Source: Sminthopsis crassicaudata (Eukaryota). From it: DNA of 64,000 nt. The position numbers and the translations under genes were made by a program. Within the stretch, counting starts at the first letter, position 1; each line of letters begins with the position of its first letter. Below the pieces are notes generated by a model. That model saw only the letters and a list, made by a program, of their open reading frames with translations, made no database searches and had not been told where the DNA came from. Of this stretch, positions 38,945 to 60,200 are shown piece after piece. Location: the NCBI RefSeq assembly GCF_048593235.1, contig NC_133617.1, positions 12,653,607-12,717,606 on the forward strand, read 5' to 3'.

Positions 38945-40147
38945 TGTCTATATAAATATCACATACATATATAACATGCATTCATATATTATTTATATAT
39001 TGTATGTATATATTACGGGTATATGTACATCTAGCTAGCTAGATATCTATCTTTAAATCAGTTTTAAAATTACTGCAAAATATGCCTAGGACTTCATCTG
39101 TGTGGATACTCCTCCAATGGCTTAGGGCACTAGTGAGATTGAAAAATTTATTCTCAATGGACCAACCTGGTCCAGTCAACAAATACTTATTAATACCCAC
39201 TATATCTTGGGCCCCATGCTGAGTGATAAAAGATGAACAATGGTCAATGATCTTTTGTGCTCGTAACTTTCCTGCATGCTTGTCAAGATCAATGAACTAC
39301 TGTCTATAAGAAAATAATGGACCAACCTGGTAATGAGCTTCTCTCAGCTTAGATTAGTAGGTCCTAGGACAATAGATGAAATCCTTCTTTCATCCCTACC
39401 ACCCTGAGGCACATCTTTGAAACCTTTCAGCTTGCTAATATTTGCAAGAGTTTGAAATATGCTGGAAAAGCCTTTGAAAACCCAGGGAGTATAGAAAAGG
39501 ACTTTCAAAATAAACTTTTTGAAAGCCAATAGAAAAAAACTAAAAATCATTCAAACCCTGATAACAACCCCCCGGGCAGTGTGACAGTCAAGGTCCAGCC
39601 AAATAAGGAGGGAGCTCGTCTAAGGGCACAAAGTCTTCTACCATTAACTCTCTGGGGAAATGAGCAAATCGTTGTAGTTTCTCTGACTCAGTGTCCTCAT
39701 CCATAAAATCAATCAATCAATATTTATTTCTATCCACTATGTCTTGTGTCCTATGCTGAGTGTTAAAAGAGGAACAATGGTCCTTTATGCTATTAACTTC
39801 CCTGCATGCTTGGATCAATGAACTACTGTAAGAAAGTAATAAAAATGAGTGATCTCATTAAAAACCTCCATAAACCTTTGGGAAGACACTCGGGGGTTCC
39901 AAGAATGGGACCGATCTAGAACAAGCTCTATTTTCCTTCTGGCCCCTGTGTCAGGAATCATGTGGTGCAGTGGGAAGAGCGCTGCCTGGAAACCCTATCT
40001 CTCTAAGTGCTAGGCCTCTCAATGAACTTCAGTTTCCTCTAAATCTTCTAAATCTGCTTCCAGCTCTGGCTCTTAGTGATTCTGGTTTAAGAGGACAACT
40101 GTGATTTCAATAGGATAAGAAACTCCCAATGAGCAGATTCTCTACAC

Positions 40148-40333
40148 CAGGGGTTCTCAAACTTCGGCCCACGGAGAGATGCGGCCTGCTGAGATGGTTA
40201 TGCAACCTGCTGGGTTATGGCAAATGGGCTGGGGGCGGAGACAGAGTGTGAGTTTTTGTTTTTACTATAGTCCAGCCCTCCAACAGTCTAAGGACAGTGA
40301 ACTGGCCCCTATTTAAAAAGTCTGAGACCACTG
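40148..40333 (+). mobile_element. hAT (Charlie-type) non-autonomous MITE, OC1/OposCharlie1-like
   Basis: Imperfect TIRs CAGGGGTTCTCAAACT / CAGTGGTCTCAGACT; perfect 8-bp TSD ctctacac at 40140-40147 and 40334-40341; internal tttttactatagtcc..ccctccaacagtct motif recalled from OC1_NA. Confidence 0.85.
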
Positions 40334-40579
40334 CTCTACACCCATGTAGCCTGGCACCTGCTCTGTGACTTACTGTGAGACACAAAGGATGGAACGGACT
40401 GTTCAAGGATCATGTAAGCCAGGTTGTGGCACCAGAAGAACTTGGAGGCACGTGGAGGGATAGTACCCACACTCTGGAGAACATGTCTTTATCAAAATAT
40501 GTGCTGTGCCCTGTGTTAGGCACTGGTAAAGGTTCCCTAGCTTTCTTTTCCCTAGCCTAGTTTAGGATATAACATGATT

Positions 40580-41325
40580 TTTTCCCAACTTCAATAGCAT
40601 TTTATTTTTCAAAATACATGTAAAGAGAGTTTTCAGTATCTATTCCTGTAAGACTTTGTATTCTAAATTTTTCTCCCCTTCCTTATCCCCATCCAAGTTA
40701 GAAAGAAATCTGACATAGGTTAAACATGCACAATCCCACCATGTTTGTCAAGAAAAAATCAGACCAAAAAGGGGAAAAAACATAAGAAAGAAAAAAAATG
40801 TGAAAATATCATATTTGAACCACAGTCTGTCTCCATTGTTCTCTCTCTAGATGCAACTGGCATTTTCTATCCCAAATCTATTGAAATTGCCCTGAATCGT
40901 TTTTAAAAGAGCCAAGTCCTTCACAGTTGATCCTCCCATGATCTTGGACACAACATATATTTTGATAGACAGATGAAACAGCCTTTGTCTTCAAAAAGCT
41001 TATAATCTACTATGGAAACTTCAGCTTTTTAATACAGACATTGTTGAAAAGAGCCAAGTCCATCACAGTTGATCATCATGTAATCTTGTTGCTGCATACA
41101 ATGATTTCTTGGTTCTACTCATTCATTTAGGATCAGTTCCTTTAAGTCTCCCCAGGCCTCTCTGAAATCATCCCTCTGATCGTTTCTTACAGAACAATAA
41201 TATTCCATAACATTCATATACCGTAACTTATTCAGCCATTCCCCAACTGATGGGCATCCCCTCAGTTTCCATTTCCTTGCCACTACAAAAAGGGCTGCCA
41301 CAAACATTTTTTCACATGTAGGTTT
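40580..41325 (-). mobile_element. L1 3' end(s), interrupted at ~40946-41038
   Basis: L1 3'UTR/ORF2 C-terminus ([13 protein letters not shown]); aaaagagccaagtcc.tcacagttgatc occurs twice. Confidence 0.8.
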
Positions 41326-41689
41326 TCTGGATCAAAACTTAGCCCTTTGGGTATGTCAACATTCATAAAAAGATTTTGAACTCCAAATTTTTGTCCTTCC
41401 TTTCCCTCCCCATACTCCAGGGAAGGAAGCAGTCTCATTGATACAGGTTATACATGTGTAGAGATAAATATATTTTAAGAGTTCTATACACAGAAGAATG
41501 TAGTATGTAAATTGATATTTTAACAACTTGATTATTATATTTTAATAAAAGTTTCCATTAGAATCATATGTATTTTATTCATACTTTTAAAATATTCTTT
41601 TAAGAAAGGACTCATAGGCTTCAGGCTGCCAAATTAGTCACTTACAGACAATTCTAAAAACCCCCAAATCAAGAGTTTGACAATTATTT

Positions 41690-58197: not shown

Positions 58198-58360
58198 ATT
58201 ATTAATATTAAATTTAGATTTAGAACCTTTTCTATGTAGATGCAGCCAAAAGTTTCTGAGCCAGAGAACCTTTCCTCTGAAGCAAAAAGATCACAGGATT
58301 TCAGAGTTGAAAAGGGTCTCAGGGGCCATCTCACCTCATGATAACCTTACCTGACAAGCG

Positions 58361-58941
58361 GGAAGGGGGAGTGAAACTGTGTTTCCTTTAAAATTATCAC
58401 TCTGAAACTGTGTTCCCTTTTGATCCTGGAATCTCAGATCCTCCTGGGAAAGCATATCTCCCCAGATAAGTTAAGTGTTGTTTTCAAGTAGAAATCTTGG
58501 TCAAAAACCACCCCCATTGATCTTTTGGGGATGCCAGACTCTTTTAAATTTCAATTGGAGATCTGGGCTGGATGCCCATAAGCATCTAGGCCTGAGGACT
58601 TTGGCTTTCTTTTCAACCTGAAACCTGAAGCCTTAAGATTCCTTTTTTAATTGACAATTTCTGAACTCATTCTTTGCAGAAGGTCTAAATCAGCTTGCTC
58701 CGATTCTTTGATATAGCTGCTAGACTCTGCCCACTGAGAAGTCATTCTCTTTTCAGTGCCAGATCCATTTCTCTAATAGGTCTTTGCCAGTAGAGAAATC
58801 AGTCTCTTAGCAAAACTGGCTTCCTATCCAACAATAAACTTCCATTTTTGCCAATTAATATTTCAGGTTTTGTGAATTCTTTCACATTGAACCTGTGTGC
58901 CAACCAAAAGGGGATTTCTCTGACGGCCACTAACCTCATCA
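58361..58941 (+). mobile_element. Solo ERV LTR (class I-like)
   Basis: Ends CCTCATCA; flanked by agcg(g) at 58357 and 58942; AATAAA at ~58833; similar to the LTR at 62176. Confidence 0.8.
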
Positions 58942-59099
58942 AGCGGACATGCAACTTTTGCAAAAGACCTCCAAGAAAGCAAAACCCAGCACTTCTGCAG
59001 GTAGCCCATTCCAGTCTGGCATAACTCTTTTGGTTGGCAAGTTTTCCCAATACTGAATCTAAATCTACCTCTCTACAACTTCCATCCATCATTCCTGGT

Positions 59100-59460
59100 T
59101 CTTCCCCCTCCATGTAAGAAAACCAGGCAGGTTTCTGAGAATAGCTTTTATATCAATGCTAAGCACTCCCAATCCTTCAAGAGATCCTTATGTGATACAG
59201 ACTTAAGTTTCCATATCAACCAGTATCTCCTTGGAACAGTCTTCAGCTTATTAATATCTTCCTTAAACTCTGGTACCCAAAAATATAGGTGAGGTTTGGA
59301 AATGGCACCGCACAGTGGAACTATCACTTCCTTCCTCCTAGAATTAATCTCTCTCTCTCTTAATGCAGTCCCCAAAATGTTATTAGTTTTAGTTGTCATC
59401 CCATCATAGCCAATTCATGGACTTTGCAATTCATAAAATCTCTAGGTTCTTTTCACAACT
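59100..59460 (-). mobile_element. CR1/L3 fragment
   Basis: Minus ORF 59148-59399 (NNILG...RRKEVIVPLCGAISKPHL.FWVPEFKEDINKL) is a CR1 ORF2 C-terminal motif. Confidence 0.85.
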
Positions 59461-60200
59461 ATCAATCCAATATTCATTAAAGCATCTATCATTGCCAGGC
59501 ACTCTGCTAAGTGCTTGGGATACAAAATAAGGCCCTAAAGGAGCTTACAAAAAAAGGGAGGGGACAACATGCCAACAAATATATGCAAAGGAAGAGATAT
59601 GGAGGATAAATAAGAAACAATTAACTGAGGGAAATCTTTGGAATTAAGAAGGATTGAGAAAGGCTTCCTATGGAAGGTGAAATTTTAACTGGAACTTGAA
59701 GGAAGCTAAGGAGGTCAGCAGAATGAAGCAAAGTGCTCCAAAGAGGGAAATTGCCTGGAGCCCAAAGGGGGAAAGACTTGTTCATGGAACTGCCAAGAAA
59801 CCAGTGACAATGAAATGAAGAGTAGGGAATAAGGTCTGAGAAGGTAGGAAAAGTAGAAGGGGCTCTGAAAGCCAAACAGAACATTCTGGATTTCCTTCTG
59901 GAGGCATTAGGGAGACATTGAAATTTGCTGAGTAGAGGTGCAGGTCCAATGTGAAAGAATTCGCAAACCCGAAATCTGTATGGCAAAAAAGGGGTTTTCT
60001 TAGCGGGCAAAACTCCTCCTTAGGAGTTTGGCACTTAGAAGTCAGCTTTGCTAGGAAGACAAACTTCTTAGTGAAGTTTACAGAGTGGAGGTTTGACAGG
60101 GTCTGAATTTTAAGGAAAATCACTTTAGTGAATGAACGCATAATGGATCAGAGGAGAGACTTGAGGCAGGCAGACTCATCAGCAGGTAGACCAGGTATGC
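59460..60200 (-). mobile_element. L2 3' fragment carrying an inserted antisense LTR piece (59941-60070)
   Basis: L2 tail motif cattaaagcatctat..ccaggcactctgctaag; the insert is reverse-complementary to 62475-62605. Confidence 0.75.

Follow-up and report, generated by a model that had tools for sequence, protein, structure and literature searches.

Short tail-less insertions flanked by target duplications and related to neighbouring DNA in a 64-kb window of the dunnart genome

A window of 64 kb from the genome of the fat-tailed dunnart, Sminthopsis crassicaudata (64,000 nucleotides; contig NC_133617.1 of assembly GCF_048593235.1, forward-strand positions 12,653,607 to 12,717,606), contains four inserts of ∼130 nt, labeled I1 to I4, that lie between short direct repeats. 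By sequence comparison, all four were confirmed as real insertions bracketed by short target duplications, and self-alignment of the window placed the best match of every one of them no more than 2.6 kb away. The insertions, their duplications, their local relatives, and the anatomy of their junctions were observed directly. The best reading of these observations is that the inserts are neither transposons nor members of a SINE (short interspersed nuclear element) family, and that they represent independent events of different ages. As to mechanism, we tentatively prefer four separate, locally templated patch insertions on a DNA template, made by microhomology-mediated template switching of the kind ascribed to microhomology-mediated break-induced replication and fork stalling and template switching (MMBIR/FoSTeS) or to polymerase theta; the set of four may well be mixed in mechanism. 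Positions given below are those of the window numbering.

The window is AT-rich and repeat-rich and looks like mammalian non-coding DNA. A Pfam scan of its ten longest open reading frames gave a single match, to a fragment of L1 ORF1, and revealed no gene context. The insert coordinates and flanking duplications proposed in an earlier note, made from the sequence of this DNA, were reproduced (16/16, 6/6, 13/13, and 9/10 bp for I1 through I4; Table 1). The significance of the flanking repeats was assessed against sites of identical geometry placed at random in this window. The repeats flanking I1 and I3 had chance probabilities of ∼4e-4 and ∼6e-4, respectively, and the repeat flanking I4 was moderately unlikely to have arisen by chance (p of 0.01−0.04). 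For I2 the probability was ∼0.01 when the repeat was required to abut the insert and 0.23 when it was allowed anywhere within 25 nt, making this duplication the weakest of the four.

Table 1 Coordinates of the inserts, their flanking duplications, and their relatives in the window
Feature	Position	Strand	Remarks
I1 left duplication copy, AATGGACCAACCTGGT, 16 bp	39156..39171	+	match to right copy 16/16
I1 insert, 144 nt	39172..39315	+	sequence between the 16-bp repeats
I1 right duplication copy, AATGGACCAACCTGGT	39316..39331	+	
I1 relative, possible source	39709..39840	+	0.54 kb downstream, direct; 85% by substitutions, 4 indels
I2 left duplication copy, TATGTC	44197..44202	+	match 6/6
I2 insert, 127 nt, terminates in six T	44203..44329	+	
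I2 right duplication copy, TATGTC	44330..44335	+	
I2 source	45317..45444	+	1.1 kb downstream, direct; identity 96.8%
Second exact copy of I3 linker plus one base on each side (14-mer)	47323..47336	+	only other copy in window
I3 source	57057..57188	+	1.0 kb upstream, direct; identity 96.1%
I3 left duplication copy, AAATTTAGATTTA, 13 bp	58057..58069	+	match 13/13
I3 insert, 140 nt (128 copied + 12-nt linker)	58070..58209	+	
I3 copied segment, 128 nt	58070..58197	+	
I3 linker, ATTATTAATATT, 12 nt	58198..58209	+	no counterpart at source
I3 right duplication copy, AAATTTAGATTTA	58210..58222	+	
Older member of I4 repeat family	58399..58915	−	matches first 54 nt of I4 alone, 83%
I4 left duplication copy, GAGTAGAGGT, 10 bp	59930..59939	+	
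I4 insert, 143 nt	59940..60082	+	
I4 right duplication copy, GAGTGGAGGT	60083..60092	+	9/10 against left copy, one mismatch
I4 closest relative	62474..62607	−	inverted, 2.4−2.6 kb away; 74% overall

Relatives of the inserts were sought by self-alignment of the whole window, and all statements about uniqueness refer to that scope. The I1, I2, and I3 units each had one partner (39709−39840, 45317−45444, and 57057−57188, respectively) and no further copy. The direction of copying is clear for I3, the source of which lies within old, otherwise unique sequence that extends beyond it on either side. No spliced donor is present. Approximately 131−139 nt of I1 could be aligned to its relative, which is embedded in, or adjoins, a MIR-like element. 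For I4, positions 59941−60071 were alignable to the inverted relative, and a stringent search delimited two blocks on the opposite strand: 59941−59978 against 62607−62570 (38 nt, 92% identity) and 60024−60071 against 62521−62474 (48 nt, 94% identity). This relative is the 5′ portion of an old ∼440-bp element (62188−62624), which is ∼70−80% identical, in patches, to the family member at 58.4−58.9 kb. Relative to this repeat family, I4 is shortened at both ends. The earlier note had described three inserts as copies of sequence 0.5−1.1 kb away, and the relatives of I1 (0.54 kb), I2 (1.1 kb), and I3 (1.0 kb) indeed lie at such distances. It gave no source for I4, for which the inverted relative was found 2.4−2.6 kb away; because I4 also has a local relative, the observation is slightly stronger than the note stated. 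Its suggestion that the inserts differ in age was supported by identities to the relatives ranging from 85% for I1 to 96−97% for I2 and I3.

The junctions combined short microhomologies with short added segments. At the left junction of I3, the duplication ends in TTTA, and these 4 nt are also found at the source, just before the part that was copied. The junctions of I2 have microhomologies of 1 nt on the left (the last base of the duplication) and 2 nt on the right (TA), and its target end, TATGTC, is like the upstream flank of the source, TAAGAC, at four of six positions. The microhomologies of I1 measure ∼1 and 3 nt, the duplication and the next bases of the source having AAT in common. 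The last 11 nt of I4, TGAAGTTTACA, have no counterpart in any relative and constitute a linker; the last 12 nt of I1, CTATAAGAAAAT, are A-rich, can be aligned in part, and are probably a linker like those of I3 and I4. An AT-rich linker of 11−12 nt was found at the side opposite the microhomology in three of the four inserts (I3, I4, and probably I1). The shared layout is a duplication, ∼125−135 copied bases beginning at the microhomology, the AT-rich linker of 11−12 nt in those three cases, and the second copy of the duplication. The earlier note had reported 1−4 nt of microhomology or a short linker at the junctions, and both were seen.

The I3 linker, together with one base on each side, recurs at 47323, 10.7 kb upstream. 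Only 0.05 matches to this 14-mer were expected from shuffled sequence, even when one mismatch was allowed. The site may have been a second template for I3, or the match may be due to chance in AT-rich DNA. Second templates for the I1 and I4 linkers were also sought, and none was found. Two palindromic features accompany the inserts. At 39158−39174, the I1 duplication and the first three inserted bases form the inverted repeat TGGACCA-ACC-TGGTCCA, because of which the first bases of I1 were possibly snap-back copied from the target end. Within I4, positions 60007−60032 form a near-perfect hairpin (GCAAAACTCCT / AGGAGTTTGGC), the counterpart of which in the 62.5-kb relative is weakly palindromic; the hairpin could be the product of a fold-back template switch within the insert.

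Known classes of mobile element were examined by several methods. Inspection of the ends revealed no poly(A) tail on any insert and no run of A at either end, and an inverted-repeat scan of the four inserts found no terminal inverted repeats, so that the absence of tails and transposon termini claimed in the earlier note was confirmed. The missing terminal inverted repeats and the variable duplications (6, 10, 13, and 16 bp) did not fit a DNA transposon or miniature inverted-repeat transposable element. ARAGORN found no tRNA-like head between 38 and 64 kb, and Rfam gave no family for any insert or source at gathering thresholds; the matches obtained with E up to 10 were at chance level. When RNA folding was compared with that of shuffled sequences, I4 (+ strand) was the sole insert to fold better, and only mildly (z −2.7); its interpretation as an H/ACA-like retrocopy was dropped, there being no snoRNA match. 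On the scale of the window, membership in a SINE or other interspersed family was also rejected, the I1, I2, and I3 units having one local partner each and no tRNA, 7SL, or 5S head. The I4 family has two older members in the window, of which the 62.5-kb copy is by far the nearest to I4. The earlier note had named interspersed-family membership as an outcome that would overturn its proposal. Because all four best matches lie within 2.6 kb, simple family membership is not what the window shows; for I1 and I4, that judgment applies within these 64 kb only.

Under the template-switching interpretation that we tentatively prefer, a chromosome would break with staggered ends of 6−16 nt, and a free 3′ end would pair, by means of 1−4 nt of microhomology, with a template 0.4−2.5 kb away on the same chromosome. 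The end would be extended by ∼125−135 nt and then released from the template. In three cases, 11−12 further AT-rich bases would be gained from a second template or by snap-back copying. The extended end would be rejoined to the other end of the break, and fill-in of the stagger would yield the flanking duplication. The order of these steps, the staggered break, the use of DNA rather than RNA as the template, and the enzymes are the parts of this scheme that we infer.

Such a DNA route accounts for microhomology at the junctions and templates close by, for I3 as a possible chain of two templates, for the inverted orientation of I4, and for the motif-less targets of I2 and I4. In its support, I2 and I3 are 96−97% copies of sequence that has no other copy in the window, and the inversion of I4 with respect to its relative is consistent with a template choice guided by proximity. 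The lack of terminal inverted repeats, a tRNA head, an Rfam family, and poly(A) also speaks for it. The recurrence of the I3 linker at 47323 would fit serial template switching. The targets of I2 and I4 match the sequence TTTT/AA at only two of six positions, compared with four to five of six for bona fide L1 insertions in the window, and thus do not resemble targets of the L1 endonuclease. The local copies, the junction microhomology, and the linkers likewise support the templated-insertion reading of the earlier note.

Several observations weigh against this interpretation. Perfect duplications of 13−16 bp are more typical of the staggered nicks made by the endonuclease of LINEs (long interspersed nuclear elements) than of the MMBIR or polymerase theta products on record. 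Insertion products of MMBIR or polymerase theta usually measure tens of bases, often with deletions, and those described are usually shorter than the present inserts and nearer to their templates. In I1 and I3, the duplication opens with an A-rich sequence, and the 3′ linker is AT-rich, like the L1 tails in the window. Over its middle 45 nt, I4 hardly aligns with its relative. For a copy that differs by 15% from its presumed source, the perfect 16/16 duplication of I1 is a little cleaner than expected (p ∼0.08); this point is not decisive, because the tRNA-type SINE at 43.7−43.9 kb also retains a perfect 16-bp duplication. Finally, DNA and RNA templates are indistinguishable in these data.

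The principal rival is target-primed synthesis of the L1 type with local RNA as the template, which would leave retrocopies with a short tail or none. We regard it as possible and, on balance, unlikely, and place the DNA route slightly ahead of it. In this rival, the LINE endonuclease would make staggered nicks, and the nicked 3′ end would prime by microhomology on a nearby nascent transcript; in a variant, priming would occur first on an A/T-rich L1 tail, followed by a jump to the nearby transcript. The short cDNA would be joined at its far end, as in 5′-truncated L1 insertions. The 16- and 13-bp duplications of I1 and I3 match those of the L1 insertions in the window (13−16 bp) and of the tRNA-type SINE (16 bp), and they start with the A-rich sequences AATGGA and AAATTT, respectively. 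The A-rich end of I1, with the AAT common to the duplication and the next bases of the source, is the internal-priming pattern of tailless retropseudogenes (PMC5322556), and the I3 linker is similar to the A/T-rich L1 tails in the window. For I1 and I3, whichever of the two candidate nick sites is taken, three to four of six positions agree with TTTT/AA, four events being too few to define a motif. I2 and I4, however, have neither an endonuclease-like target (2/6) nor an A-rich end. The donors are non-genic local DNA within 2.5 kb rather than abundant RNAs, and there is no obvious reason why a template made of RNA should be confined to ∼1 kb. Moreover, I2 and I3 are young (3−4% divergence) in a lineage with heavily degraded L1; of 100 ORF2 fragments of L1 sampled in the fat-tailed dunnart, only 2 were intact (PMC5010896).

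A TATA-like sequence, AATATAAT, lies at 45286−45293, 24−31 nt before the point at which the copied part of the I2 source begins, and the source ends in six consecutive T (45437−45442). On account of these two features, the source could be a short polymerase III-type transcription unit, with I2 as a retrocopy of the RNA made from it. The resemblance may be due to chance, there being no Rfam match, stable fold, or recognizable proximal sequence element.

Retrotransposons of ordinary kind are also present. L1 3′ ends in the window have duplications of 13−16 bp and A-rich or A/T-rich tails. Those at 5427−5476, 42182−42231, and 48652−48701 have mixed tails, in which runs of A are interspersed with T and which often end in TTT, and each lies between copies of a 13−15 bp duplication that starts A-rich. 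The tRNA-type SINE occupies 43729−43914 on the − strand; its A-rich tail is long, and the 16-bp duplication around it, CTCTTTCATTATTTTC, is perfect. Presumably, it is an old WSINE1-type element. Related copies are located at 46529−46609 and 53593−53647. This SINE, unlike the I2 and I3 units, has several copies in the window. Other repeats were considered and rejected as further inserts. A 16-bp direct repeat with a spacing of 702 bp, at 50.4−51.1 kb, proved to be part of an internal 35-bp repeat of an antisense L1 5′ region (50410−50444 and 51112−51146; 88.6% identity, with the 16 bp as an exact core), which resembles a repeated L1 5′ monomer. Local matches of 38−52 bp at 33.1/34.7 kb and 49.7/53.0 kb were pieces of L1.

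Comparison with described systems gave partial likenesses. Tailless retropseudogenes (Schmitz et al. 2004; Noll et al. 2015, PMC5322556) are, in the described cases, copies of small RNAs or mRNAs that are abundant and have their genes elsewhere, and they are inserted at TT/WAAAAWW targets. They have in common with the present inserts the short length, the target-site duplications, and the lack of an oligo(A) tail, as well as, for I1 and partly for I3, a 3′ end in an A-rich stretch and slight complementarity between target and source. A duplication of ∼7−20 bp, as expected of this class, was seen in I1 (16 bp), I3 (13 bp), and I4 (10 bp, 9/10 matching), whereas that of I2 has 6 bp only. In contrast to tailless retropseudogenes, the sources here are anonymous DNA 0.5−2.5 kb away, two of the four targets lack the motif, and three of the four inserts have linkers that are not from the source.

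Templated sequence insertions (Onozawa and Aplan, PMC5110952) are patches of ∼70−400 bp that fall into two classes, both with distant donors: class 1 has a duplication, a poly(A) tail, and a TTTT/A target, and class 2 has neither duplication nor tail. They resemble the present inserts in being copied from elsewhere in the genome into a break and in having junctions that show microhomology or extra bases. They differ in that the present inserts join a duplication, the lack of a tail, and a local donor. The insertions called MMB-TIs (PMC8421209) are copied in inverted orientation from a template no more than 100 bp away and range from 10 bp up to the length of a sequencing read. MMBIR/FoSTeS and polymerase theta insertions (PMC8421209, PMC4490562) are like ours in that nearby sequence is copied from a microhomology primer, that templates may be switched in series, and that direct as well as inverted copies occur, but here the tracts are ∼130 nt, the templates are 0.4−2.5 kb away, and the duplications are clean and 6−16 bp long. 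Chimeric L1 insertions produced by template switching of the reverse transcriptase, such as U6/L1 and others (bioRxiv 10.1101/2025.02.02.635956), are also flanked by duplications and have a short 3′ part, corresponding to the AT-rich linker here, and a 5′ part from different templates. In the dunnart inserts, however, there is no recognizable L1 3′ end, the linker is 11−12 nt, and the 5′ partner is local and non-genic rather than a small RNA. Because none of the described classes fits fully, we treat the inserts as a variant of known templated insertion and not as a new kind of element.

The similar sizes of the inserts raise the question of a common measure. The copied tracts are ∼131−139 nt in I1, 121−127 nt in I2, 128 nt in I3, and 131 nt in I4, and the flanking repeats, measured from start to start, are spaced by 160, 133, 153, and 153, respectively. 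A fifth duplication-flanked insert of 97 nt (40947−41043; spacing 142) has no relative in the window. Its flanks are copies of a 45-nt antisense L1 piece (40902−40946 and 41044−41088, 84% alike), and an uninterrupted L1 relative of this site is located at 48251−48305.

The earlier note had proposed size-selected capture, in which local DNA of fixed length (nucleosome-core or Okazaki size), or a tract measured by a ruler, is inserted at staggered germline breaks. The closely similar tract lengths and spacings, with that at 40.9 kb added, favor this proposal, and local non-repeat duplicates of any other size were absent when the window was aligned to itself in an unbiased manner. Nevertheless, we consider it improbable and not supported by the present results. 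The four inserts come from one of 618 windows read, which invites a look-elsewhere effect, and one of them is inverted with respect to its source. Because the sources are still in place, the copy must have been synthesized rather than excised as a fragment; and because the duplications vary from 6 to 16 bp and the linkers are not constant, a single stereotyped reaction is argued against. In our reading, the tracts are alike in length by coincidence or, at the very most, through a modest effect of processivity. Only slightly less improbable, in our estimation, is a recurrent dunnart or dasyurid germline process that pastes DNA from 0.4−2.5 kb away into staggered breaks, with a tract of ∼130 nt set by a nucleosome or Okazaki ruler. 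Were it to operate, thousands of duplication-flanked, tail-less local copies would be present genome-wide.

It is as improbable as size-selected capture, in our view, that I1 and I4 are ordinary family members derived from distant master copies, with the nearby relatives coincidental and the local copies reduced to I2 and I3; just as doubtful are the identities that this would give them, a short MIR-related unit for I1 and a fragment of a long terminal repeat-like or other element for I4. The I4 family does have two older, longer members in the window. The I1 unit is MIR-like, its relative may itself be an insert nested between ATAAAAT and ATAAAAAT, and its perfect duplication stands against 15% divergence from the relative. 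When the I1 relative was deleted and the remainder realigned to the seven MIR copies of the window as a test of nesting, the MIR copies were too diverged to discriminate. Against family membership, the best matches of both inserts lie within 2.6 kb, and I1 has no further copy in the 64 kb; with one other copy placed at random, proximity of this kind would be expected in ∼2% of cases. I4 is shortened at both ends, and its blocks are 92−94% identical to the local copy, while the two old members are ∼70−80% alike. Neither I1 nor I4 has a tail or a promoter-like head.

One further feature adjoins I2. Directly 3′ of the insert, positions 44331−44390 comprise a pyrimidine tract and AG, 45 nt, and AG/GTAATC. 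From its sequence, this stretch resembles a candidate small exon with both splice sites, for which I2 would supply part of the pyrimidine tract.

As four cases in one window, these insertions are a modest curiosity. If duplication-flanked local copies were common in this genome, they would represent a class of germline mutation that has been little described, intermediate between insertions driven by retrotransposons and those driven by repair. Such a class would help to judge which enzymes scar marsupial genomes in which L1 is dying out. The copies would also provide clean, homoplasy-poor phylogenetic markers for dasyurids.

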